From Paragordius varius (lineage: Eukaryota > Animalia > Nematomorpha), in NCBI GenBank assembly GCA_964247055.1, contig OZ176052.1:4898001-4962000 (forward strand): a stretch of DNA of 64,000 nt, written 5' to 3'. Shown here in pieces: positions 6,996 through 63,454 of this stretch. The notes under the pieces were generated by a model. The model was not told the origin of the DNA and ran no database searches. It was given only the letters and a program-made list of their open reading frames with translations. Both the position numbers and the translations under genes were made by a program. The number at the start of each line of letters is the position of its first letter. The stretch's first letter is position 1.

Positions 6996-8769
6996 ACAAT
7001 GCAAATAACTTTAGAAGAATTATCCATATACTATGCACGCTCTGATACTTTGGATCCCAATTTATCCACATTTGTATTTCGATACCTACTTGATAAATTC
7101 GATGAAGTGTCCGAAAATTATAGAGAATCTTTCACTCAAATCCCCATTCAAAAAATGCAACAACTATTGAGTTCTGATGAATTGCGGACTAAAAGTGAAA
7201 TGAACGTTTTCCGAGCAGCTGCGAATTGGCTAAATTTTGATTTTTCGACCCGGTCAAAATACGCCTATCAAATACTCCAATATGTCAGAATGACCCATAT
7301 TAAACCTTGGGAAATTATTGTCCATATTGCTTCACAAAATCATCTATTTCAAAGTGCGAACTGTGTGAAATTGCTTTACAACGCTATGGCATATCATGCA
7401 TTAAATCCAATTACAACATCCGGAATAAATGGTAAGCGTTACAAAATATATTTCATAGAGCAGGGGACCAATGGCTTCGCAGGCCGCATTTTCGACTCAC
7501 AGAAAACAGGCCGCCCGCATTATATAACGCACACGAATAAATATATTAATGTATTTTCATGGAACTGAAAAGAAGCATTACAATCCGATATAACTACTAA
7601 ATGTTTTAATTTTTGTTCATTCCGTTGGTAAAATTTGGAAATAAATCTATTTTTCATGCCACCCGCCAAAAAATTTACAAGATTATTTATTCGGTTAATG
7701 GTTAGATTTTATACACTAAATAGCGTGTTGGGCCTTCTTATTATAGAGTGTCAGATTTGTGGGTGCCTTTTGTACATTTGATGAAACTCGATTTTTAATA
7801 GAGGTGATTTGCATTCAAAAAAAGATTAGGATCCGATTTTTTTAAAAACAGTTGTTGGTATTGCTATAACTTTTTAGCTCAAATTCAAATGCCCCAAAAT
7901 ACATATTAAAAAAAGCTCTGCTAGCAAGCCCTTAATTTTGCCGATAACATTTTAATTATAAAACTAGTGACTTAGAACAACACTACCAAATTTCATGAAA
8001 TTCAAAGCGTTGTAAATCAAAAAAATTTGAGATAAAATATAGATTAATAGTTATTTCTATTGGGATAACTCTCATCACACATAAAAATAAAATAATACTT
8101 AAAGGATTAGTCTTTGGACTCACGACATCATGAAAATATATAATATTAATTTGATATGTTTAAAATTATTATGCAATTATAGATGGCATTCAAAATCAAT
8201 CATCATCTAATTCCAATGGCAGAAGCCCATCTTCAAGTCACGATAAAGCGTGTCCTAACGATACTATAACCTATTTGCAGAAAGTTATATGCAAAGAAAA
8301 AGTTCGATGTCCAAAATTATTTATTCCAGACATAACACCAATTATAAATTTAGCATCGAATGGTGACACAAATACAATATATAGCAATAATAATAATAAT
8401 TATATCATGTCCACTCCATATAATTACAACAACAATGGTCCTGGTTACCCAATAATCAATCATCTAGCAACGTATACTAATCAATTACCTATTTTTCAAT
8501 CTTTTCAATCGAACAATAATGTACCTTACACCAACAATAGGAATAAAGTACCTTGCTATAATTTTAGATATAACAATTTGAATGCCCAATCTATTTACAG
8601 AGGTGATCATTTCGTACAGAACAACAATAAACCATATACGAAAGATGATCCTACATTCATTAGTGAGGTGAAGTTGGTTAAAAACAGGAATGATAACAAA
8701 AATCCTAATGACAAGAATAATGGTGATTTAAATAATAATTTTAATGTTCAATATTTTACATCGTTTTAG
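6996..8769 (+). CDS. BTB/BACK-family (KLHL/KBTBD-like) protein: BACK-domain exon plus Asn-rich terminal exon; 5' exons unresolved
   Basis: Exon 6996-7431 encodes FTQIPIQKMQQLLSSDELRTKSEMNVFRAAANWLNFDFSTRSKYAYQILQYVRM, the BACK-domain pattern. The phase-1 donor G|gtaagc at 7431/7432 fits acceptor tatag|AT at 8183, which is in frame with ORF 8275-8769. A possible BTB remnant exon (FEFNWKNVDK) near 6743-6772 is weak. Confidence 0.7.
7461..7740. mobile_element. hAT (Charlie/Buster-like) MITE
   Basis: Begins cagggga..., carries gcaggccgcatt, and ends in a decayed TIR (gtgttgggccttctta). Flanked by tcatagag / ttatagag, an 8-bp duplication with central TA. Confidence 0.65.
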
Positions 8770-14217: not shown

Positions 14218-17200
14218 ATGGAGAATTTTTTTCCTCAAAAAAGTTTTCCTTCTACCGTAAGTTCAACAAAACTAATCTAAAGCAAATCTGTAAACCACAT
14301 CATACATTGTTTATGCGGTCATTCACCATATCGTTCTCTCTATATTCCCAAATAAACGGCCAATCAGCCCCACAATTATTAAAAATAATTTTTTATTCGA
14401 TTTTAATATACCAAGAATATGGCATAACTACTAAAACATTGTATTATATTATATTAAAAAAAAGTATTATGCTGGTATTCTTGGGATATTAGAATTTCCT
14501 CAACATCCCATATGAAGGTCTGATGATAATGCGGTTTAGCTAAGATTAGTACAAACAGATGACATTTAGGATGCATGGTTATAACAGCGATATACTTCGC
14601 ATTCAAAATGAAATAAACCAATTATTGGAGGGTAAAAACGCTAAATTAGAAGAAGCGAAGCTTCAGTTCACCCATGAATACGAGGTAATTACAATTGTGT
14701 ATTTACAATGTTATAGGAAAGGCTTTTGTTGATTAAAGCCTTATATGACAAAAAGGCGCATGATTTACAGAACGAACATAAAGCTTTAAGGGATAATGCA
14801 TATAAAGAATTCGAAGTACGTTTTATAATTATATTACAGGATAAAAAATTGGCGTTAAAGTCCAATCTTCAAAAACAATTGGAAGAAGAAAGGAAAAATG
14901 CCATACATGAATGCCAAAATATTGAACTTAACCAAGGTTATACATTTTAAATAGGATCCAAAACATTGGCTTTGCTGGCCACATATTTGATTGAAAAAAT
15001 TAGCGCCGCATTTTTTATATATATGGGCATTCACAATTAATTTATTGATTTCAAAGACTGAAAAATGACAACGCAACATTAATCTTAAATAGTTCTAGTA
15101 AATTAGATAGACTTATATAAATACATTTGCTAAGATGTGAGTATATTTTGCAATTTATTTCCAAAATTTTTGCGCATGTTAGACATCACTGAGTAATTAT
15201 TTTCTAAATTTAATTTTTAGAAATAAACGAAGTTAAGCCAGCCTACACTCGACGGATGTTAAGGCGACGAATGCCAAACGATTTACCATGTAATGGTGCA
15301 GATACAAAGCGCAAAAAACAATCCCTACCTGATATCCTTTTTAATATTTTAATAAAATTTACCCAAATATATTATCCTTAACTCTTTCAACACATATTAA
15401 ATTTAGTTTAGATGAAAAATGCATTGATGAGGATTTAGCAATGGTTAAAACCATGAAAAAAGATTATGCCACCACTTTAAAAACAGGTTTTTTATTTAAT
15501 AATATTTACATTCATAACCTAATAAGCATATTTAAGGCTTTTTTGTGAGCAAGATTTCCAAACTACATCTTTTTATCAATACTGTTTTTCTCTAAAAGAT
15601 GAGTGTTAAAGTTTTAATTGATTAAAATTTAAAATATTAAAATCAACATCTGTTATATTGAATTTATGAATATTTATTTGCTTTTACTCAAATAACCCGT
15701 TTGAGAATTCCCATTTAAGTATTCGAAACTAGTTACTGATATTGTGCTATTTTATAATTTGCTATTCCAATAAATATTTATTAAATTATTAATTAGTTTT
15801 TAACACAAAAAACTAAATTTTGGTTTAAGGTTATTTATATGGTTATAGTGATTAGATATATAATTCATCTAATGGCACTAAAATAATATATGGCGAAAAT
15901 GTTCGTAAACCCATCTATATGTAAATCGGTATCATGGCTATAATTATTCTAAAGTACAATATAATTCGCAATTTTAGTAAATTTTCATATTAATTATAAA
16001 ATCTGGCAATATTAAATATGCCTTTTCTCAAATAAAACCGATTTTATCTAATTAAAATATGGTTTTTAAATAATTTTTTAATTCACAAGATACGCATGTG
16101 CTTACACACTTATTATTACAATAGCAGCTGTAAGTATATTCATTGTGTTAAGTACTCTCCGTGTTATATTATGTCGCTAATTTTTGGAACATTTCTTAAT
16201 TTTTAATTTTACCCAACAATAAAGAAAAATTCTTTCAACAAAGTTTTCATATACCTAATAATTAATTTTAACAATCTAATAACTTTGACGTATTAGAAAC
16301 AGAAATCAAATACAATGTTATAAAATTTACGCCATCATTTATGCTTAAGAAATATAAAAACTATTCCCAAGAAAACGCATAGTGTCTCATTTGAATAATT
16401 GTGAACTAGGCATAGGTAATATCGCAAATTATAATGCTGCTTAAAAGCGAAAAATTATTTCGATAGATGGTAGTTAAATCAGAGTTAACTTTTTTTGTAA
16501 ATTTTAAAGCTTTACATAATGTTATTAGGGTTAGAATAGGGTCTGCCGAAAGCGCATTTTGACCAATTTAGCATAAAGTTTAATAATTTTTGTTGAAAAC
16601 TAAAGTAACCAGATAGTACCCAAACCTTGTTTAAAACTAAACATATGGTGTGAATCTATGAAAGCTCTCACTAACGATAATATAAAGTTAATTTTATATT
16701 TATTTTGTAAGTTTAAAATCCTAAAACCAAAAATAATGTTAGAAAATAGTGACTATAGAGCGTATAGGTGTATTTTTATTAAATTTTTTACAATATTTAT
16801 CCTTTGGCAATTTTTATATATTTATGGACAACTGCTTCAATGGTTTCTTTACATTTGATTATATAAAACAAACACCTTTCTAAATTATTTCCAATCCGTC
16901 CCATTGGAATATTTAATTTTATTAAACTTACATAGTTCATGAAGGAGATAAATATGAGTTTATGTCAACTATGAAATAAAAATATAAACCTTAATTTTGA
17001 ATAGCAGTAAATATAAAACGAATAAGGAGTATGATTTTTTTTGGGTGGTCAAATATATTTTGTATATTAAGTTTTCTTATCCCACGTAGATCAAATCAAA
17101 GTTGTCTCCAACATAGTAGATGGTAAACTATATTATGACAAACGATACTATTATCGAGGCCAGGCTGTTTATATTTCTGGTCCTCATTCAAACGCGACAA

Positions 17201-17391
17201 AACTCGCTATGATGTCACCACCTTCGGACAACTCAAATAGCGAAGAAAATAGTTATGCAGCCATCATACAAAGCATTGAACATAACAAAGTCTGCCTTCG
17301 AAAATTAATCGATAATAATCGTATATACGTCACCTTGGCTCATCTCCAATCTGGAACATATCACCTAAGGAAACGGATAATTAATCATTGA
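14218..17391 (+). CDS. SUDS3: Sin3 histone deacetylase corepressor complex component SDS3
   Basis: Exons 14218-14256, 14493-14533, 14570-14684, 14717-14815, 14840-14936, 15221-15331, 15394-15486 and 17090-17391 join in frame. Motifs KEFE|DKKLALKSNL, EVKPAYTRRMLRRR, IDEDL and [21 protein letters not shown] match SDS3 (human [21 protein letters not shown] as recalled). The first two exons are less certain. Confidence 0.92.
15332..15393 (+). other. U12-type (minor spliceosome) AT-AC intron, 62 nt
   Basis: 5' site ATATCCTTT, branch site TCCTTAAC at 15375-15382, and AC terminus 11 nt further on. Removal gives the in-frame junction LP-D-IKFSLDEKCIDEDL. No GT donor is available there and read-through hits a stop. 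Confidence 0.93.
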
Positions 17392-18183: not shown

Positions 18184-21100
18184 TCATATCCTTTTAAACA
18201 TTGGTTTGAACGTTCTTGGAGCATAAGATCTCAATAAATGCACTAAAACAGCCTATTATATAAAATATTGAGAATAAATTAATGACGAGATTAAAAAATA
18301 GAAATAATCATTTTGTAATTAAAAGTTAATTATCCAGTTACATCCAATATTTTTTATATAACAATAATATCAATGTACCATAAACGTCCATTTTCTATTT
18401 TCCGCTTCATTCCACACCAATGATTTTTTGTCATAAAAAATTTTGTCCGTAACCTCCTCTTGTTTCCGAGGTAGGCAATGCAAAAACACCCAATCTTTGG
18501 GTGCATGTTTAACCATCTAAGAGAAAACATTAAAATTTTAATATAGTAATTAGTTGGAAAAATCTGCTAAGAATAATGATAACTTTTAATTGGGAAAAAA
18601 AATAATACATACAGTTTAGAGTCTCTTTTATCCTTTTTAATTAAAGGGTAAAGACTTAATTTGTCTTTGGACTTGTGAAGGCTTTAACACTCACCTGCCC
18701 AGGGCTGACAATAATGGTGGAAAAACTGCGTAGTTTCGGGGTAGGAACTCTGGAACGCAGTGTAAGAGTTCAGCGCCCTACCTACTATAACATCACATAA
18801 ATAATGATTTAAGTGTTGCCAACATTGATGATAACCCCTGGCAGGATCACAAATATTACAGGCACAGCTTCTATACGGTTACAATGACTAGTCATCATAC
18901 AAAGACGATACATATAAACCGTAAATGAAATGTCAAAATGTTATTAAAGTTATAATTTTGTCCTTTCAAATACTGACAATTAAAAAAATTTGTAAAGAAA
19001 TATACTTATAACGAGATTTACGCTAGTATACCAATAAATATATATTTAAAAAGATACGATTACAGTTTAAAAATTGTAGAACTTCGGAAAAATTATATCA
19101 TTAAACATGTGCAAATTTAAGAAAAAAATCAATAAATGAATTTTCGTTTAAAATTAATATAATACAGAAAAAATAATAAACTATGCCATAAAAATATATT
19201 TCTTATCAATGGTGGGTTATAATAGCCCGAAAACACATAACTAATTTTTAGGGTGAATTTGAATTGTTCAAGGGTTTATTATTCGAGCAATATTGTTATA
19301 AAATGCCTCGCCTCAACAACTCCAAAAATAATTGATTTGTATAAAACGGAGCAAATCAATATGTGGCCTAATAAAAAAACCGTTTTAAAAACGTACGTTA
19401 GAATCAATCTGGTATCCTTTGAAATCTTTTAATCTTTGTGATTTTTCACTTTCTTGTCCCATGCTTATCCATGTATCAGTTACGATAACTTGAGCGTTTT
19501 GTATGGCTTCTATCGGGTCTTCGGTATATAAAACTTTCGTTCCATTCTAAAATAAAAAAAATTGGCTTTTGCGAAAAAAGTATTTAGAAGAAAATTTATT
19601 TTAATATGTCAAAAATAGATATGAAACATAATTTTGTTCAGTAAGGCGAGCGAATTATTTAGATTTTTAAGGGCAAAATAATGCTTAAATAAGAAAAATA
19701 TAAATAATTGATTTAGGGATTCCAGATTCCGTTTAAATTAAAATGAAAAAATTTAGTTTTTATTATACTTGTTGAGCCAAATTTTGGGATTCCTTAACAA
19801 CATTTTCATTAGGTTTGTAATTCTAGTAATTAAAAAAATATCAATTGATAAAATAGTGCAGTCGAAGGACATGAAACAACACAAAAATGAATAATGAATA
19901 AAATATGTTGAATTAAAAAAGATTTCTTAACTATTGACATATACTATATTTTAATGAATTTGCAATAAAAAAAATTTTTTATTCTTTCATATACCTCTGA
20001 TACAGAGTTGCCCAAAACAAATAGCTTCACGGGCCGCATTCAAAAAAAATTATGAGTATTAATAAATATTATTTAAACCTAAAAATTTCGAACAAATCTA
20101 TTTTCCCTAGTTCTTTGTCAAAAGATGTCAGATTTTGTTTAACAAAACATCAATATTACTGAGATCTATTTTTTGAATAAAAATTTTGCAATTACGAAAT
20201 TCCGTAATTACATGGAAATACTCCAAATTTTTCGTAGGCCCTGTGTTGAACACCCCTGCTCTAATATGTATATTCCTTACATTTTTTAAAATAAATGAAA
20301 ATAATTTTATTTTATGCATCATATTTGTTCAAATACTTTATTCAACATAAATTTATTTAATGATAACAGAATTAATTTTATAAAACAGTTTATTCTTTAC
20401 ATTCATCATATCTTATTCTAAAAGTTATTATTTATAAAATTACTAAAATACCACCTTTGGTGTTGCAAACGATATATTAATTCCCATTTTTGGTGCGCTA
20501 TATAAGAGAGAATGCAGGATATTATTGCCATCTCCAATCCATGCCAAATTTAATCCGTGTAAATATCCAAAATGTTCCTAAAAAATTATTTTTATAAATA
20601 TATAAAACTACATTTATATAGCGCGTAAAATTTTATTTTATACACATTATATGAATATATAATTTAATGAGTAATAAAAAACGGAAAAGAAGTTTTATTT
20701 GTTCAAATTTTATTGAAAGGCGCGATTAAATTATTTTTTTATTGGAGAAACATATAATTTTATCGCTTAATAAATATTTGATTATATGCCAAAAATATGA
20801 AATTTATATAAAAAACAATTACATTTTTTATAAAAAAAGATTTAATATTTGGTAAAAGTTACAAAATTAAAAAACATTAATATGAAAACTCTATTATACG
20901 AAATAAAAAATTAGGGGCCTACGAACTTGAAGAGTCAGGTAATCGGCAAGAATTTGTAATGGATGCGTAAAATCCGATAAAGCATTAATAACGGGAATAT
21001 CGGCTTCCTCAGCCAAAGTTTCTAAATCTTTTTGATCAAACACTCTTGCGACTATTGCATCCGACATGCGGGAAAAAACTCTGCATTTAATGAATTTAAT

Positions 21101-21623: not shown

Positions 21624-24600
21624 GCTTTTCAGTTGATTTTATGATCTAAATATAATGATAACACTTGGATACACATTGGTCAATCCTTCGATTCAAATTG
21701 GGGTATAGATAGACCTTCTTTGTGTAAAATTAAATATTTATAAAAATATGGAATTAAATTAAAACCATGGCAAAAGCTTGTTATATACCATTAGTGAACC
21801 GAAAAATGAAAAATTTTTTCAAAACTTGATATTTATTATTCGGTTAAACCAAAAAGATTTTTTGAAACGTTTACTTCATTAGTTTTTTAAAAATATTAAC
21901 TTAAATATTTTAAGTATTTCAATTTAAAACAATGTGTTAATTTGTAGTAATCTTTCTATATATTTTAACAATACAATGATCCATTTTATATAATTTTTTA
22001 AGGAAATAAAGTTTATAACAGATAGATATTAAGAAAAGGGTGTGACAGGCATGGCCTCAACCGTTACCGTCCTCACGGACGATCCACAGACAGATATTAT
22101 TATAAAATTTTTCAAAATATACATAGCACACAACAAATATGATGAAAAATATATACTGATAATTTAAGCTAACGAGATTCTTATAGTGTTTATAAGGGCA
22201 TGAGTCATTAAAACACTTCTGCCTTTTCATTTTTCGCTTTACATATTGGTTCCAACATTTAAAAATTACTTAGAAACCATTGTTCTTATGTTATAGATAT
22301 AAAACATATATTTTTACAGTTTTATGACTTCTAGCTTTTGGGACAGCTTCCACGTTTACGAACAGTATTAATTATCAAGTTTTTTCTGGTTAGATGTAGC
22401 CTAGAAGACTTTTTATTTACATTTTTTAACCATAATACAATTTATTTGCCTGTTAAATAAAAATGGCGGCATTCCAGATAAGAATATTTTAAAATTTAGC
22501 TTTTTTTAAAATTTGTGTAGTACGCCTTACATAATTTTGAATTTTAATCTCTCTCTGTGATATAACGACAAAAGGTAGAGTGATAATATTTAAAATTATA
22601 TTGCTCAATATCGATTGATTGTAAAGTTTTCGCATATTCAGCTAAATAAGAAAGGATACTTCAAAATATTAATGAAATATATCAATAATATTTAAAAAAT
22701 ATTTATAACACTACAATTTTCGCATGTGGCCCCAAAAATCTCAAATTTGTAACCCCCTTTAAAATGGGTTAGTTGTTTTAATAATTCTAAACGGCCTATA
22801 AGACAATTATATATAAAATATATGCCTGATTATGAAATCAATTAACATTACAAAAAGTAATATTTTTATTTAAAATTTAATGACAAAATTTTGTTAAGGA
22901 TTTCATGGTATTTTAGAGCATGTTGTAAAAAGTATTGAATTATTTTATTATATTATGAAAACTTTTTTATATAAATCATACTAAACATTATCACCTAAAT
23001 TTGATTTGGTTTTTAAATTGGGTGAAATGTCAAAAACACAATTTATATCGATCTAATAATCGACATGCATTTGAATGTATCGGTAAAATTTTTTGATACG
23101 ATTCGGTTGAAAATGAAAATTGTCGAGCCGAAATGTAAGCCGTCACAAAAGGCGGTAAACTTCTTCGGATGATTTGGTATAACTTATAATTTATTGCAAT
23201 AAATAATGCTGAATTTGAATATTAAAAATTATTAATTAATCGCGTAAATTTTATGGGCATTTTACGAAATCAACACTTAAATACAATTTGGGGTAGTTTG
23301 TAAATTCAAAAATATATATAAAGGATATTGGATTTTAAATTATGCATACTTTATCTTTTAAGGTGTATGATTTAAATATGCAAAGTAAAATAAAATTTTA
23401 TCTCAAACTTTTTCACCATTTTTTAGATCTTTTTAATAACATAACAACCGACAAATCAGGTTTTGGTTAATTTGGTTTTAGAGAAAATCGTCAAATACAT
23501 AAGCTTTCTACCTTATGTTGTATAGCAGTGTTTAATAATTTAATTTTAAATTCATTCAAAAAAGTAGTTAGACAAGTTAGATCTGTTGGATACAAAACTA
23601 TTCAATATTGTCATCGACTACGAAAAAATGAAAATCATTCCGCAAGTCTATTACTGTTTTATTAAGACCCAAAAAAGAATTCTTTAACATATGATATTAA
23701 AAATAAATTCCATGTAAAACGTTTTTGTGTTTTTGTATATTTCAAAAATGCTGAGTAATAGGATTGCTTAAACTACATACTTGTTTTTAGTAACCTTTAA
23801 AGCAATGTGACTCTATTTAATTTTATCATTTATTACTATCAACTTAAAATGGAGCATCATAACAATTATATAAGATTAACTTGATGTGCAGAGCGATTTC
23901 CATAAAAAATATTTAAATCTTGTTAAAGGACAAAAACGTGTCACATCAAGTTTGATTGCAAAAACTTAAATACTAGAATTTAGACATACCAAATGTATCG
24001 AATCGATTAGGATAACTTAATTCTTAATGATATCAAATATTTTCTATTCATATGTATCAAATATAGCTTGTTTTTTATTAAAGTTTTAAATGCGATTCTT
24101 ATCATCGTTATTTAAATGTAAATGTTTTAGTGCATAAACTTCGGTTTTAAGGGCTTTAATGGAAGTGACATATAAAATTTATCAAAAAACATATATAAAT
24201 GAAAAACAACAAATTATACGCATACCGCGGCCCATGGGCCCATGCGGCCCTTTTTTGGGCCCTTATTTTAGTCTAAATTTCTGCAATTTACAGCCATAAA
24301 ATTTTTTCGGTATTATATGGTCGGGCCTTGAGACAAAGTAAATATTTTTTACGTCCTGTTTAAATTTTTTGGTGAATACCAGTGCCATAAATTAAACTTC
24401 TCCTTGGAAAAAGAATTCACTTTCATCTGAATATAAAAATGGCATCTAAGGAAAACCAACAGGAGATATATGTATTTATTCATATTTACCCGTTTCCTAT
24501 TCTGTTTTCTTGATAATTTAAATTTATAAATCATGATTATAGCCAATAATTATCCTATAATTTTTTTTAATATATAACACTTGGCGTCAATTTTTTTACA

Positions 24601-33737: not shown

Positions 33738-36700
33738 ATGTTTGAAATCGATGAAAATAATTTTGATTACCTTGTTATACCATCACCAAATAAGGATGGG
33801 GAAAGATCCAAAAAAATGAGAGACAACAGTAGAAAAAAACGTAAAAAACGGGACCTAGAGGTTCAAATCATTCCAGATCCAAATCAAGTCATATTACCGG
33901 ACAATATATATCAATATTTGAAACAAGAAGAACGGAATAAACTTAACCTATCTTCTACGGGCACGAATAATGATGATGAATACCTCATGCATCAATTACA
34001 TCCAGATTCGATCGCTAGTAATCAGGATCTCCCCAAAAAGTTTATATATGAGTATCATCAACAACAACAACACAGTTCCAATAACAACAATAAAGGCCGC
34101 CCTCTAGACCACTTGAACCCCAATATGAATATAGGTGATTCTATCGTATATCAACCCGATTTAAATCAAAATTTACATTCGTACACCAATCTTAGGCGTC
34201 AAAAACCGTTAGGTTTTAAGGCTGAACTTAAAGGACGAAAGGCTAAATCAATGAAACAACAACAACATAAACAATCATCTTCTGGTATGACGCCGCACCC
34301 GCCAACCTCTCAAAGAGTTAACATCAAAATTTTTGATAAAGATTTCAATCTCACCCTTCACCAAAATGATAAGTTAGTTGGTCCAAATTTCATATATGCC
34401 CTGCGTAATGGTAGCCAAGTGAAACAATTGGCCGTTAGAGTCCCAAGCTGTTATTATAAAGGATATAATTCAAATGCCAATAGTAACAATAAACTTCCAT
34501 CCTTATCCATCAATGATAATATTGCTGTTCAGCAGAATGGGAATGGAGGGAATTTATTTTTCGATGGGCAAAATGCCGAAGCGCTTAGCATCAATGTTCA
34601 AAATCAAAGTTTTATTTTTCCGGCTGACGCTCAACTAGATATAATAAATAATGATGGTACCACTGAACATATGGCCGCCTTAAGCACTTGTAGGGGAGAA
34701 TTGGTAATACTATTAATAATCAATTCATATTTTTTGACTGATGATTCTAATTTAATGTTTTACTACTTTTTTGTGGGCTTTTATAAACTTATTGAGTTTT
34801 GAAACAATTTTTTTACTTTTTAAAATGTCAAGGAATTCTAATTAAGGTCCGGAATGCTATTTAGGATATTGGTCTTGTTTTTGTATTTTCAATAATATGG
34901 CCCAAACATAACAAAAGCACGTTGGAAATAGTTCCTTTTTTGTGTGTAGTTATGGCAAATAGAATTTATTATTTTCGAAAAAGGATAATCAATAGCTATC
35001 GTCGGAAATACATATAGTGGCAATGTTATGGTTCATCCTTTTCATGTCTTTCTGTTTCAGTTTTTTTATCAATGCAAAAACTTCAAACAAATTATTTTGT
35101 AATTATATATACATTTAATTATTTTATTTTTTTACATAATCTATAAAAAAACTACGATATATCAAAATTTTGAACTTAATATAATTATAAATGACTAAAA
35201 TTTATGCATTTTCAGTAACAAGATTCACATGATTTTAATTTTATGCAATCTTTCTCGTAACTTTCATAGCGCGGATATGTAAGAGATGACAAAGATGGTT
35301 CCCACTATTACATACACCCCATGAATCCGCAAATTATTCATAGGACAAAAAGATCCCTAAAAAATATATATTATAAACTCAACTCAACCAATAGTTCAAG
35401 CCAACACAATTCCAGTAAACTTTATTCGCCTTCTCCCAATCAACATCACAAAAATATTCACGCATTCCTTCGTAACACGATAAGGCCACACATAGTAATA
35501 AAATTGACCAATTTTATAAAGCATCCCTCTCACGACGATCATCATCACGAAAGTTCTGCAAGCTCTTACTGCCCTTTAGGTAATATTTAAATTTAATGAA
35601 AATAAACTAATAAAGTTATATCCAAATAATTCTATTTGAGGTGGAATTTCATAAAAACTATATAGCAATAGAAAAGATTAGTTTTAGTGAATAGTAATTG
35701 GTGTTATATAAAATGATATTCCATTTGTATTTCCCGTTGGAAAAAATTTATTTCTAGGTTTTGTCAGGCCCTCAGCTCTATACAAAGAGTTAAAGACTTT
35801 TTTAATGTTTTTTTTTTAAAATAAAATTTATTTACAGAACTTGTCATAATTGAAAAAATATGTATGTGTGAGTTAACTTTTAATTAATGCAAATCCCTAC
35901 ATAAATAAAAATTTTAATTTTAAAAGGACTAAAAAATAGATAAAAGATATTATATAAAATATATCAAAAACATTTTGACAGTATTCTTAAAAAACGTTAG
36001 ATTACGGCGCGTATATCATTTATTTAGTAAAGATAAATAATATTATTTTAATTAAAAAAAAGGGTATTGAAAGCGTTAGTTTTTGCTATTCACCAAAAAA
36101 GGGAACTAATCATTTGTAAAAAAAAATATTTATTTAGATCACTTTACGCATCATCAAGATCACATTGTGGATCCGCTAAATTTTAGAAAGACTATCCTAG
36201 AATCGCCTCGCCATAACAGAGTAAGGCGGGCCCCTGAAGATAATACGCCAGAATTAGAGACTGACGCAACTGTAGAGATTGGATTGTTTTATGACGAAGA
36301 TCTTTACATGCAAACACAAATGGCCAGTAATAGGGAAGAAAAAATCATGGATTACGTCTTGAACATTATGAATGCTGTAAATTTTTGCTTCTCTATTTCT
36401 TTTGGTTATTTATTCTGTAAAAAAATAGATAAATATTGTTTCCATCCAAATTCCAAACCTTTTAACATATTTTCGAATTCTTATTCAATATCCATAAAAA
36501 TTTCAGGTTGGATTATTGCTAACGCATCCCTCATTGGGCAAGTCACTTGATGTCTCGTTGGTTCGTCTAGAAATCTTTGAAAAACAACCGGTAATTCCTT
36601 TATTTCCCCGCTAAATTTTAGTTTCTACATTACATTATAAAGATTAATAGACCATTAATTTTCAATTATTACAAAGTAATTATATGAATTATGACGATTC

Positions 36701-42547: not shown

Positions 42548-44641
42548 TCACATATTAATTGAGGATAACGTAGAATCCTTTAGAAAACGCAATATTATTA
42601 GAGCCATACTTTTCATTTTATCGTTTTTCGAATTGGTAATAAATTGATTAAATAATATTATGATCAAATCCCTTAAATTTTCATCTGTTAGTATAAGCTC
42701 TAATGTCATCCGTTTTAAATAATCATTGTCGTTTTTTGTCCCATCTAATAAATTGTTTGATTTAGAGTTGCTCTTACACAAAATATTATGAGGGCATTGG
42801 AGTGTCATCAAATTTTCCATCCAATCAAGATACAAGTTTAAAGAGGCCTCATACTCTTCTATAATAACTGGTACGTTATCCTTGAGAATGTCAAATTCTG
42901 CATTCGTATTACGCAAATCAGGCATCATAATTTCCGTAAGATTGATTAGATATCTGGTGATTGTTGTCAAAAATACTAAGAGTGCGTCAAAATTTGGTTT
43001 GCTATTTCCAGGCTTATTAAAAAATGTAGTCTGTAATCCAAAAAAGGATATATCGTCTACCGCATGACTATCCGAGTTTAAAAGGTAGAAATGAAACAAT
43101 AAACGAACATAACATGGTGTAAGGCAAGCTTTGTCATCACTGTCATAGTATTGTAGATATTTGTGCAATTTTTTTAGCAAAAGATTGCGGATAACTTCAT
43201 TGAACACAGAATTTTGAAGAGATAGCATTTTAAAGTTTTTTCTATTGCTGACATAGAGCACATCTAAACAAAGATAAGCAAAATCAATGGCCTTTTCCAC
43301 ATACAATGGGGTACATTCATGCTGAAAACGAACCCTTTTGTGATTATTAACTATCATTTCTGTGGCGGCATCCTCCTGAAGAACAGAAATAATATGTTCA
43401 TAAAATTTGTGATAAAAAACGTTTTTGTGTAAACATAATTCTTCGCTCTTCTTATCCGAAATATTGAGATTAAAAAGGCAAACTAATATCCTATATCTGA
43501 TGTCATAACATTCGCTTTCGATGTAAATATCTAAAAGCTTTGCATTTGTTGCATCTATCATATCTAAAAAATTGGTGATTTCATTTCTATAAGGTTTATG
43601 GCCCGTTAATTTTGCCAAAAAACCTAATGTGCGAATATAATAGTCATTGTTATGATCCATAATTTTATTTTGGTAATCTATTTTTGTTAGGATGTCCAAC
43701 TGCTTTGCAGACAATTGTAAGAATTTTATAAGATCATTTCTCTCAAATATAAAGACGTCCTCAGTGACCATTTCATTATTTGGAATCGCATTGCACAGGA
43801 TCGATAAAGCACTAAGGTGCTTATTTTCAAAAGCCAATTCTATTATTTTATCTTTTATGGTTGGATTCCAAGACAAAAGTTTGCGGATTAAAGTTTGACC
43901 AATTATGAAGTTACTCATTATACTAAATAGCTGAAGAATGGCTTCGACAGTTTCAGATGTATTGAGTTTAGAAAAGGAATCATGGGTGAAAAAACTCCAT
44001 AGTAAATTTATCAGTGCTGTACCATTTTCCGATAAAAGCCTTTCAATATTATAAATCAAAGAGGGGGATATTGATTCACCAATCATTAATGACAAATTAC
44101 GAATGTATATCTCTTCATCCTGAAATATATCAATCTTTTGTCTGATTAAACTAAGATAGTTAAACAGTGCTCTATCGATTTTTAATAGTTGATACCCTCC
44201 GAGTTTCGACCATACTATTTTACCTTCAGTTTGATGCTGTTTTAAGTCTTTGTGTAATTCTTCCAATAAAAAATTGATATGCTTCAAAGGTTTTACGTTT
44301 AAATCAAGATTGGATATAGTCGTAATATAATATTTAAATTTTGTTACAATATCGTCATAGTTTGTTTGAGATATTTTTGTGTTTTCAGATTTATTATGTT
44401 CATTAATACTGACTTTTTTATCAGATTGATGAGTAAAAGTTTCGCCATAATCCCCAACTGTTTCATATTTATTGGAATATTCTTCTTTCAAAATAGATTT
44501 TGGATTAGGAAAATCTTTATTTATTGTTACGGTGGAATTTATTACATTTTCAGAATCACATTTTGGTTGTTTTACGCTATCTTTTGCATTTTGTTCCTCC
44601 AGTAACTTTAATTCATTGATTATACTATCAAAGATATTCAT
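42548..44641 (-). CDS. Intronless 697-aa protein of unknown function, predicted alpha-helical repeat-like
   Basis: A 2094-nt stop-free frame cannot arise by chance at this AT content. It has an ATG start, a charged low-complexity N-terminus and Leu/Ile-rich amphipathic segments. I recognise no family. Confidence 0.85.
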   Translation of the reverse strand: MNIFDSIINELKLLEEQNAKDSVKQPKCDSENVINSTVTINKDFPNPKSILKEEYSNKYETVGDYGETFTHQSDKKVSINEHNKSENTKISQTNYDDIVTKFKYYITTISNLDLNVKPLKHINFLLEELHKDLKQHQTEGKIVWSKLGGYQLLKIDRALFNYLSLIRQKIDIFQDEEIYIRNLSLMIGESISPSLIYNIERLLSENGTALINLLWSFFTHDSFSKLNTSETVEAILQLFSIMSNFIIGQTLIRKLLSWNPTIKDKIIELAFENKHLSALSILCNAIPNNEMVTEDVFIFERNDLIKFLQLSAKQLDILTKIDYQNKIMDHNNDYYIRTLGFLAKLTGHKPYRNEITNFLDMIDATNAKLLDIYIESECYDIRYRILVCLFNLNISDKKSEELCLHKNVFYHKFYEHIISVLQEDAATEMIVNNHKRVRFQHECTPLYVEKAIDFAYLCLDVLYVSNRKNFKMLSLQNSVFNEVIRNLLLKKLHKYLQYYDSDDKACLTPCYVRLLFHFYLLNSDSHAVDDISFFGLQTTFFNKPGNSKPNFDALLVFLTTITRYLINLTEIMMPDLRNTNAEFDILKDNVPVIIEEYEASLNLYLDWMENLMTLQCPHNILCKSNSKSNNLLDGTKNDNDYLKRMTLELILTDENLRDLIIILFNQFITNSKNDKMKSMALIILRFLKDSTLSSINM

Positions 44642-58459: not shown

Positions 58460-61400
58460 ATGTCAGACTTGGATGCTTTGACAACTCATTTTTTGAATAA
58501 AGGGATCCCATCATACGTCTCAATAATATTTCTTGTGATTGGATGTGTCCTCGCCCTACTAATTATAATGGTCACATTGATATACTTTAAATTTAAGGCA
58601 AAACAACTGTCCAAACTAAAAAAGTATGTGTTTGTTCCTAATTAAGATAAAAGATTATAGCACAGTGCGGTAAAAAAGGTGTTGTATTATCTATATTATA
58701 AACACGGTTAAAATTATGATTTAAAAATTTTGATTTTTGTTATTAGTCCTAATCGGCAAAATCAATAATTAAGGAAAGCAGAATAAAAAAAATTAAGTTA
58801 TATTTTCAGTAAAGAGCCAAAAAAGTAGGTTAAATCGCACTTTGGCGTGAAATGTGAACCAATCTAATGATTCTTGGGCGTAAAAATTTTCTGAAAAACT
58901 GGTCGGTAAATATTTTTAACATGTAAAAAAGTATTTCATAGTAAATTTAGGGTTCAAAATTAAAATTTCTATAATATTTAAACATTTCAGCTTTTTCTTA
59001 TATCGCATAGAAATTATTTTTACGCGTTATCTTACTATATAAAATAACACTGGACAACAAATTTTTCTGCCACTCGAGTTTTTTGCATTTTCTGATATTT
59101 AGTATCATTTTAACAGTAAATCTGAAATAAAAATTATAACTCGTTAAAAGAATTTTGTATAATTTGATTTTTTTCGATTATGCGCCCTTTTTATCAAAAT
59201 TTTACTACAAAATGTTTTTCTTTGAAAATATACAAGTAATGCCCATTTGTAATATATCATTCGAAAGAGTAATAAAAACTCTATAAAATGCATACTAATA
59301 TGTATTACATCGACAGTTAATATTGGACACAGAGAGCGACAAACGCGCGAAGCGAGAGCATTTTTTTTAATTATTATTTTTTTAAAACTACTGGATTAAA
59401 ATAGCTCAACCTTTGTCTAGATGGTGATGAATGTCCAAAAAAGATAACACAAGAAGTTTTATTGATTAAAACATTTTTTATTGCTTTTATGACACTCAAA
59501 ACAGCCATTTTTAAATTTTTTTGTTTTTTAAAAATTACCATCTCATCAATATTAATTTATTTTCTTTACGAGGCTGATAATTTCGAAATTTTAAAGATTA
59601 AAACAAAGTTTAAGGTATTTTTGATCTTTTATAGCCATTATGTAATAAATTTACAGTTATAACTATACATTTTAGTATCCACTAGGTAAAATATTTATGA
59701 TAATAATAATTTTTATTAAAAAAGCAAACCAAAAGCTTTTTCAAACATTTTTTTTAAATTAAATACTAATGTAACCCTAATAATTATTTTAAAATATTTA
59801 TATGATTTCCAAATTAGTTTGTCTGTGAAAATTCTTGACTTATTTAAGGATTGAAAATTTCGACCATTTAAATCTAAATAACTTTTACATACGATTGATT
59901 TAAATGACTTACTACCATTTAAAAGATGCAGTTTTTTGCGCTCATTCGAATGATATAAAATACATGGCTTCATATGTAAAACTTTTAATTTTCGAAATTT
60001 CGAGTTTAATGTTAAATCGGGGCCAAAAATTATCGATAAACTCTAATATAAAAAAATTCTTGCATGCTAGATCAATTTTCTTTTCAGATATACTAATTAT
60101 GTACTTTAATAAAATAAATTTAACATTTACAAGAATGGCAGTTAAAAAAAGTTAAAATTTGTTTTCTAGTGTTATATAAATTAAATCACATGTTTGCATT
60201 TTTCAATGTGTATCCAGCCATTTTAAATATTATTATAAATATTTCAAAAACTTTATAAACATAAACCTTGATAATATTATTTTGTTTTTGATAATCCATA
60301 TGATACATAATACGCATATTTAGCTGACGGGTTGTCAACTGTAATTAAATGGCTGCGTAAAATGCGATTTTAAGCTTTCAGCTAATAGCAGAATAAATGA
60401 AATAACTTTTTACTTGTTTTATCATATTTTTCAAAGCTATAATTTATTAATGAAAAAGCCTAAAATTTAACATTAAAAAATCCTAAAGTAAAAAGCCGAT
60501 AGAATGTCATTAAGATAACCAGATTTATGTAGCTATTACATTAAAACAATTATAATTAATAGTTTTTGTTAATTGTAAGGAAGTTTTTTATAAATTGTAA
60601 ATATCATCAGAGATTTAATTTTAGCTAAATTTTACCTATTATATTTTTGAGAAGATTAGCTACGTAGGGATATTTTGGCACATTAATATTCTAAGGTTGT
60701 AACCAAAAATCAAAAATAAACCAATTAAATCTAAAAAACTGAAAAATTAATTGCATTGGTATAAATTCCACAACCTATTTTTGGTAACTCTTTAAGCTTT
60801 TGTTACTAAAGAATACACGTCATAAATTCTGTCATAGAAAAGAGTGTTTTTTGTTTTTACATAAAATATTATAAATTACGATCAAAAAAGTCAGGTTGTC
60901 AACTTGTCCAACCTATTATAACATCTATCATATGCCAATGTCAGTAGTATTTGCCAATTATAATGAGAGTTTTATTAAGATTTATTATCTCCAAAATAAT
61001 TATATATAATATAAAATTGATATATTTATTTATTTATTATAATGCAGGAAACAAGTTACATATTTTACAGCATCTCGTGAAAATTTAAGCCTCACAACGA
61101 ACCCTCATCACCAACAAAATGTCATTACATATAATGATGATAGATTTGGTACAACCAGTGCAAAACCAAATGTATCAAATACACGCAAAGCACCTCAAAA
61201 TGTTACTACAGTAACACCTAAAGAAAAAAATGAGATGACCATAAAACAACTCTCTTTTACCAATGACAAAAGTCAAATTGAAAATGACAAAGACACTGAA
61301 AAGAAATCACTACAAAATGAAACTAAAGACTCCTTAGATTATATCAATCATGATAATACACAATTTGACACTAAGAGTCATGCCTTAGGACCAGATACAC

Positions 61401-63454
61401 AAACTACTGTTATTTGCACAGAAGCAATTGAAAGCTCACAAAACTTAAATAATGTAATAGTTGTTACTACCAGCAATAAAATACCAACTTCAACAAGGAC
61501 TCAAACAACCAACTCACCATTTTCACACAGAGTTAGCCAAGATCAATATAATAAAATTTTAGTCAGCTCGCAATTCAACGAAACAAGCAATATTCATACC
61601 AACAAAACTGAAACATTAACTCAAGTTTTTGCTCATCCAATGATGCATGATGATAGAAATCTAAATAGTCATAACACACAAAATGTTAACGGCAATACAG
61701 AAAAGGGACCTCAATCATTAATGTCATCCAATTTAGTACCAACCACAAAAACAACAACATCTAATTACGAAAATGTAAATTCTCACGCTAATTCAAAGAC
61801 CAAGAAAAACAGCAAAAAACCTACTGCTCAACAAAGCAATAACAAAAGATTCGGGAATGACACCACAAAAAGCAGTAATAAGTTAAAAATTCCATTAGTT
61901 TGCAAAGGTGCTGGTAATTATAAAAAAACGAATAATAACAAGAAAAATAATGACAGTAATGGAATTACGCATGATTTTAATAGCATTGAAATGGAAACTT
62001 CAGGCGTTTTTGCAGCCATGGAAAATGTTACTAATCGCATCATCAAAGAAATGTAATAAACTTAACATTCACTAAAATCTATTTATGCCAAGTATAAAAT
62101 AGAATATGCGATTATTGTAATTAAATTTTGAAACCTACCAAAAACACTTTTTATGAAAAAAATGTAATATATATATATATATAATTTAAGAAAGCTCTTA
62201 GGGGGGATATGGTCATAATAATCACCTCATTAGTAAATCATAATTATTATTTTTAAGCATTTTTTCTAAACTATTATTGATATGCGTAATATAGATAATA
62301 TTGAAATTAACGTTTAAAAAGTAAAAAAACACTTTTCCTAAAAACTTTAAGGGTGACATGGTCAAAATTTACTCTATAGTTTTTTATATTTAATAATTGT
62401 TGATTGCTAATAAAAAGGGAATGTCAAAACCCGTATAGTGAAGCAACTATATGTAGTACCTTAGATGATACCAGTATGAATAATATATATAACGAATCCA
62501 TCTATGATTTAACATGCTCTCCTTCAAACGATCATTATATAGTATGCAATTCTCCCAATATATCACAACCATTTCACCCCGATATAGAATTGCAATCTGA
62601 GCGACCAATATCTACGGAAATCGAAACCAATAATTTCGGATTTTTTAAGTAATAATATACGTTTTTTTCGGTATCAAATAATGGATATTACTCTGTATTG
62701 ATCAATGTTGTGTTTAAAATCTGTATATTAAACAAATTCTATACGCTTAAATATAATGGTTAAATAGATTTTTATAAAAATTATTGTAAAAAATGGCTGA
62801 ATACTATTAATTTTACAAAAAATATGTGTAAACTATTCAGAAATCATATTATGTGACTATTTGACATAAAACATAATGATATAAGCTTAATTCATTATAA
62901 ATTGTTAAAAATCTTACGGCATTTAATTTATTATTTCCTGGATTAGTTGGGTAACAAACAAGCTAACAAATCATTGATTGTGCTCAAAAAATATTAATTT
63001 TAACAACCGTCATAACCCTTTGTGATATTTGATTTAAAATATTATATATATCTAATTATAGTACTTAAGCTAAAAGTTAAAACAGATCTTTATATCCAAT
63101 ATATTTTATACATATTCTTATGATTTCTTTTGTTTTAGATGGCATGACACAAGATCCCCCTTTACAAATACATTACTTCCCATAATATCCATTCCCTCAA
63201 GCAAAAGTTTTCAAAGTGAAGACATAAAAAGCATGTCTCCAAACATTACATTGAATTTACATGAAGATGCTCCAATCATATCAGCTGATCTGGTAGATCA
63301 CAGTTCTCCCTTTTCAAGCACATCAAATTTATTGTTGTTTGATCAAACACCCCAAACTTCCAAGTTTTCACCGACCGCTCGTTTTCTAAATCAGAAAAAT
63401 TTACAGAGCGTTCATAGCTTACCAGGTATAATTGATTTTTCGATCGGTTATTAA
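58460..63454 (+). CDS. Orphan single-pass membrane protein with a long Thr/Ser/Asn/Lys-rich cytoplasmic tail
   Basis: Exon 58460-58623 has a hydrophobic helix (VSIIFLVIGCVLALLIIMVTLIYF) followed by a basic stop-transfer stretch (KFKAKQLSKLKK). Phase-2 GT-AG junctions link 61048-62052, 62418-62648 and 63139-63454, each in frame with a listed ORF (61235, 62404, 63233). Confidence 0.75.

Follow-up and report, generated by a model that had tools for sequence, protein, structure and literature searches.

In the window, i.e., the 64,000-nt stretch of Paragordius varius contig OZ176052.1 analyzed here, positions 15332-15393 of the + strand very probably constitute a U12-dependent AT-AC intron within a single-copy SDS3 gene, most likely orthologous to intron 7 of human SUDS3, and splicing of this segment is predicted. 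The evidence comprises perfect consensus signals at a frame-restoring exon boundary, the position of the intron relative to conserved protein blocks, and genes for components of the minor spliceosome elsewhere in the genome.

Signals and Reading Frame of the AT-AC Intron

The 62-nt segment opens directly at an exon boundary with the donor ATATCCTTT (15332-15340, + strand), which matches the U12 consensus /ATATCCTT(T) at nine of nine positions. The branch site TCCTTAAC at 15375-15382 likewise agrees with its consensus throughout (8/8), and the acceptor AC (15392-15393) follows 11 nt past the end of the branch motif, corresponding to 12 nt past its second A, in line with the U12 pattern of TCCTTAAC lying approximately 10-15 nt from a 3' end with terminal AC. 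The 5' flanking exon ends with ...CCTG and the 3' flanking exon starts with ATATTAAA. All elements named in the original prediction, that is, the donor, the branch site, the AC 11 nt downstream and the CCTG|ATATTAAA junction, are found in the sequence as described.

Across the segment, the frames of exon 4 (translation EINEVKPAYTRRMLRRRMPNDLPCNGADTKRKKQSLP) and exon 5 (translation IKFSLDEKCIDEDLAMVKTMKKDYATTLKT) join in phase 1, with the split codon G|AT encoding Asp. The unspliced frame, on the other hand, stops at the branch motif TCCTTAAC, as the ORF 15256..15381 runs into a stop codon at 15382-15384. When enumerating all GT/GC-AG and AT-AC pairs, 15393 was the sole acceptor that keeps the frame with donor 15332 while retaining the protein blocks on both sides, corroborating the earlier claim that removal of this segment is needed for joining two SDS3 blocks. 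We infer that 15332-15393 is actually spliced out, and that this is accomplished by the minor spliceosome.

The SDS3 Gene of Paragordius varius

The gene model comprises six recognized exons with 271 codons on the + strand, and the phases are consistent at all junctions. Exon 1 (14571..14684, putative ATG at 14571 or 14559), deduced from the translation and the ORF list, encodes the N-terminal coiled-coil part and is separated by a 32-nt GT-AG micro-intron in phase 0 (14685..14716), supported by sequence and frames, from exon 2 (14717..14815; ORF 14726..14950). The following 24-nt GT-AG micro-intron (14816..14839) is in frame and free of stop codons; when read through, it adds eight residues that, in the alignment to 4zqa, stand opposite a single SDS3 residue and a gap. 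Exon 3 (14840..14936, DKKLALKSNL...) ends in phase 1 and is followed by a GT-AG intron of 284 nt (14937..15220) whose phase fits exon 4 (15221..15331). The latter encodes …TRRMLRRRMPND…KRKK…LP and ends in phase 1 with the G preceding the 62-nt AT-AC intron (15332..15393), supported by its splice signals, the in-frame join and its complementarity to the U11, U6atac and U12 candidates of this genome. Exon 5 (15394..15486, IKFSLDEKCIDEDL…) also ends in phase 1, and a GT-AG intron of 1603 nt in the same phase (15487..17089) leads to the last exon (17090..17391, …DGKLYYDKRYYYRGQAVY…; stop codon at 17389-17391) encoding the C-terminal domain. The length of 24-36 nt previously ascribed to the neighboring introns is therefore correct for two of the four (32 and 24 nt) but not for those of 284 and 1603 nt.

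Assignment as an SDS3/SUDS3 homologue, a subunit of the Sin3/HDAC corepressor, is supported mainly by the last exon, which matches the SDS3 C-terminal domain (PDB 7sxi_A, E 7e-10, 42.4 bits) in two stretches spanning the domain. Together with the perfect consensus signals, this match bears out the original classification as a U12-type AT-AC intron in SUDS3. For exons 2-3, the single PDB match is the SDS3 dimerization domain 4zqa, albeit a weak one (E 6.5). The exons flanking the AT-AC intron are recognized through short shared motifs and collinearity alone, and neither exon 4 nor exon 5, queried separately, returned a PDB match. Pfam Sds3 (PF08598), covering the coiled-coil and Sin3-interaction region, did not match either exon by exon (30-38 aa) or in the six-frame translated genome, a null result that is uninformative because the exons are too short. 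Furthermore, no matches among 1.84 billion representatives were obtained (HMMER) with the 74-aa ORF reading through exons 2-3. The homologue search with the 106-aa frame of the last exon found none in the length range covered, full-length SDS3 proteins being outside this range, and scanning metagenomes with this exon yielded no confirmed relative.

The missing exon-by-exon match to Pfam Sds3 might be taken as a sign of a decaying or unexpressed gene copy in which the intron persists as a relic. However, none of the six exons is interrupted by a stop codon, their boundaries are canonical with matching phases throughout, and the C-terminal domain is well conserved. Moreover, the last exon occurs in a single copy in the 110.6-Mb genome, so that the locus is the sole copy of the gene, and a relic is considered extremely improbable here.

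Probable Correspondence to Human SUDS3 Intron 7

The comparison with the human gene is based on short strings printed in the supplementary tables of PMC8280824, where SUDS3 intron 7 is given as a U12-type AT-AC intron of 1004 nt. The upstream human exon ends with ...CTCCAG, followed by ATATCCATT, with G as the last base before ATATCC (PMC8280824). TCCTTTAAC is given as the human branch site and ...CTCTCAACAC (...CAACAC) as the end of the intron, after which the exon continues with CCCAGC (PMC8280824). In addition, the forward primer in human exon 7 encodes RPNDPV, and the exon 8 primer, read as its reverse complement, encodes IMEDLRT (PMC8280824). Counterparts of these two blocks are present in Paragordius as RRRMPNDLP in exon 4 and CIDEDLAM in exon 5. 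Both introns thus interrupt the same interval, from the RRRPND/KRRK block to the I-x-EDL block, and both have AT-AC ends preceded by G as last exon base. The original prediction had raised the question of whether the SUDS3 intron is also U12-type in other animals, and this is the case for human intron 7 in the same interval. The human flanks are presumably to be read as P-A-P-A|Q-L, which fits the human protein and would indicate phase 1. Accordingly, phase 1 is apparently common to both introns, the human phase being read from the published flanks.

The likeness extends to the 3' part of the introns. Both have the branch site TCCTT(T)AAC, and the 3' ends are very similar, AACTCTTTCAACAC in Paragordius and AACTCTCAACAC in human (...AACTCT..CAACAC). 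When aligning 15375-15393 with the human 3' end, the difference amounts to one T inside the branch motif and a further two T's behind it. An extended pairing with U12 (CTC with GAG) could have constrained this stretch, or the resemblance could be coincidental. In other respects the two introns differ, above all in length (1004 nt in human versus 62 nt in Paragordius) but also in the donor (ATATCCATT versus ATATCCTTT). From the split codon to the L of EDL, the distance is 14 residues in Paragordius but 15 in human, which requires the assumption of a one-residue indel. Likewise, the kind of support is different, as human SUDS3 intron 7 serves as substrate in RT-PCR and lariat assays (PMC8280824; bioRxiv 10.1101/2023.10.12.562036 = PMC11039992), whereas the Paragordius intron is known from sequence alone. 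With its position compared with the human gene alone, the Paragordius intron is most likely orthologous to human SUDS3 intron 7 and would then have been inherited from the animal ancestor. Since the human intron is a standard U12 AT-AC substrate located in the same interval, the finding is one of conservation and not surprising.

Motif Frequencies and Alternative Splice Sites

By themselves, the U12 motifs occur no more often than would be accounted for by chance. The donor core ATATCCTT is found 11 times in the window (5.6 expected) and the branch motif TCCTTAAC four times (1.6 expected), and the strict pair TATCCTT-N(5-35)-TCCTTAAC occurs nine times genome-wide as compared to 12 occurrences of the reversed-pattern control. 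Two further pairs in the window, at 18186 and 19791 and, on the - strand, at 23328 and 22900, were considered as introns and rejected, both being devoid of coding context. What makes the intron call at 15332-15393 convincing is that the pair sits on a frame-restoring SDS3 exon boundary and in the interval of the human SUDS3 U12 AT-AC intron.

This bears on the possibility that the mRNA is formed with a regional GT-AG pair, i.e., one of the donors GTAATG (15290) and GTGCAG (15296) together with the acceptor at 15411, the AT-AC signals being incidental. Both alternatives preserve the frame, and the chance frequency of the strict motif pair at such spacing genome-wide is compatible with incidental signals. 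Use of these sites, however, would delete sequence to the left and right of the junction, namely the KRKK...LP and I-K-F-S-L segments, which align collinearly with the human blocks flanking intron 7. In addition, it is very unlikely that a pair arising by chance would coincide precisely with a frame-restoring boundary within the interval of the human U12 AT-AC intron. Splicing via the GT-AG sites is thus regarded as very unlikely, and removal of 15332-15393 as an AT-AC intron is clearly the preferred reading.

Minor-Spliceosome Components

Genes for minor snRNAs were detected elsewhere in the genome. U6atac and U11 score well above the respective Rfam cut-offs (66.3 bits versus 33 and 62.7 bits versus 39), while U4atac reaches 50.7 bits and hence remains 2.3 bits below its cut-off of 53. 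The Rfam model of U12 did not return a match in a genome-wide pass. However, when the genome was searched with a pattern for the conserved 5' end of this snRNA, one candidate locus emerged, which scores 34 bits against a cut-off of 53. Its first 30 nt are near-consensus, including GAGTAAGGAAAAT, and a Sm-like site is present, the conservation being confined to those 30 nt. U4atac and U6atac can form a perfect 12-bp duplex between nt 2-13 of the former (L003:1502-1513) and nt 38-49 of the latter (L001:1538-1549). Compared with the Rfam consensus, two pairs of this duplex are changed on both sides (A-U to G-C and G-C to U-A), and compensatory changes of this kind are expected of functional genes whose products interact. 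The four snRNA candidates occupy L001 1501-1643 (U6atac), L003 1501-1604 (U4atac), L002 1501-1748 and, on the - strand, L004 1528-1378.

The snRNAs also fit the signals of the SDS3 intron. The 5' end of U11 is complementary to intron nt 4-11 (8 bp) and U6atac to intron nt 4-12 (9 bp), whereas the TAAGGA/GAG elements of the U12 candidate pair with TCCTTA-A-CTC (6 + 3 bp), leaving one A bulged. The course proposed for the SDS3 intron is that of U12 splicing as established elsewhere. The U11/U12 di-snRNP would bind the donor ATATCCTTT via the U11 5' end jointly with the branch site TCCTTAAC via U12. Subsequently, the U4atac/U6atac.U5 particle would join, and U11 would give way to U6atac at the donor. 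Attack on the donor would then come from the A bulged within TCCTTAAC, expected at 15380 or 15381, and with the AC 12 nt downstream as acceptor, ...CCTG would be joined to ATATTAAA... in phase 1.

Among the proteins of the minor spliceosome, SNRNP25 (U11/U12 25K) is encoded by an intact ORF of 157 aa on the - strand (L027:1450-1920, corresponding to about 12079319-12079789 of G000:C5), with the coding part being intronless. The ORF matches PF18036 with 83 bits and PDB 8r7n_B with an E value of 7.7e-15. Beside it, two ORFs of 146 and 116 aa lie on the opposite strand. A genome search for PDCD7 (PF16021) gave no candidates, but this search misses genes of small exons and is hence no evidence of absence. 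Searching for minor snRNAs and proteins, as suggested with the original prediction, was successful for U11, U6atac, the near-cut-off U4atac and the U12 candidate, while it left PDCD7 without candidates. Overall, the implication that this genome has a working minor spliceosome is well supported by U6atac and U11 above and U4atac near the cut-off, a weaker U12 candidate and the intact SNRNP25 gene.

A few known introns with AT-AC ends are removed by the major spliceosome, and such U2-type removal might also be envisaged for 15332-15393. Introns of this type, however, lack the U12 donor and branch-site consensus alike, whereas both are complete and correctly spaced here. Considering also that minor snRNAs and SNRNP25 are present in the genome, processing of the SDS3 intron by the major spliceosome appears most improbable, and assignment to the U12-dependent class is retained.

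Length of Minor Introns

The original prediction had further proposed a separate minimum length for minor introns. For the length census, the strict donor-branch pattern was applied across the genome, an approach seeing perfect-consensus introns only. Besides the nine matches (12 for the reversed-pattern control) in the spacer class of 5-35 nt mentioned above, 13 matches (control 6) were obtained for spacers of 36-66 nt and six (control 10) for spacers of 67-97 nt, and the flanks were inspected for the first two classes. Spacers under 26 nt yielded no credible candidate in this strict-pattern census. The shortest candidate is a putative 53-nt GT-AG U12-type intron on the + strand at L011:200-252 (G000:C6:5152318-5152370), in which GTATCCTTT is followed by an AT-rich interior, TCCTTAAC and an AG 12 nt on. 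The frames fit, the upstream ORF being in phase 1 and the short ORF downstream running to a stop codon, and this intron, if real, is shorter than the one in SDS3. On the - strand of another chromosome (L015, G000:C1:7023009-7023460), a candidate AT-AC U12 intron follows an RRM-like exon ending ...RGFAYV in an SRSF10-like gene; it is of the same class and subtype as the SDS3 intron and, at 61 versus 62 nt, nearly of the same length, although residing in another gene. Additional AT-rich ATATCCTT...TCCTTAAC candidates located after protein-like ORFs would have lengths of about 86-88 nt (L019) and about 80 nt (L026). Three others (L016, L020, and L022), also AT-rich and after protein-like ORFs, lack an AC or AG at the usual distance of 8-19 nt from the branch A, leaving their length undefined; their 3' ends could be non-canonical, or these sequences could be something other than introns.

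Credible strict-motif U12 candidates thus begin at about 53-62 nt, a range deduced from small numbers and compatible with a U12 floor of roughly 50-60 nt. With major introns shrunk to 21-36 nt and minor ones apparently stopping at about 53-62 nt, it is tentatively considered that the U11/U12 di-snRNP sets a higher, lineage-specific length floor, a reading we regard as possible but on balance doubtful. The proposal of a separate minimum length receives weak support, the lower end of about 53-62 nt being marked by few cases. In Blastocystis, minor introns are mostly AT-AC and have a median length of 39 bp (Larue and Roy, 2023, PMC10639083). Like in Paragordius, these introns reside within a short-intron genome; Blastocystis, however, belongs to the protists and has minor introns by the hundreds, much shorter than the 62 nt found here. 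Because of this median of 39 bp, any U12 floor would be lineage-specific, and 62 nt is not a universal limit. If true, the length floor would represent a natural experiment, as the di-snRNP must hold donor and branch site together, and it could explain why U12 introns persist with lengths of their own in an animal with micro-introns.

Genome Context and Significance

The window has a G+C content of about 25% throughout. Outside the SDS3 gene, an ORF at 6999-7568 (+ strand) bears a BACK domain of the Kelch-like type (E 5.7e-19), indicative of a BTB-BACK-type gene, and an ORF at 33738-34802 (+ strand) encodes a reprolysin (ADAM-type) propeptide (E 3.1e-07); both genes fit an animal genome. Two long ORFs of 697 aa (42548-44641, - strand) and 273 aa (61235-62056, + strand) lack a Pfam match and are unusual for a small-exon genome.

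The SDS3 intron is an expected conserved feature and does not involve a new mechanism. The rate-limiting role for a Sin3/HDAC subunit that the original prediction had suggested is speculative and found no support in this analysis. With its 62 nt and perfect signals, it represents a compact and clean substrate for addressing the question of the shortest U12 introns in animals. Loss of the minor spliceosome has been described for nematodes, tardigrades, myxozoans, and oikopleurids (Larue and Roy, PMC10639083), and a literature search for papers joining Nematomorpha and the minor spliceosome found none. Taken together, the intron, the snRNA genes and SNRNP25 point to a fast-evolving, very AT-rich micro-intron animal that retains the minor spliceosome along with an ancient U12 intron. 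In a horsehair worm, such retention would help to date the loss of the minor spliceosome on the nematode side of Ecdysozoa.
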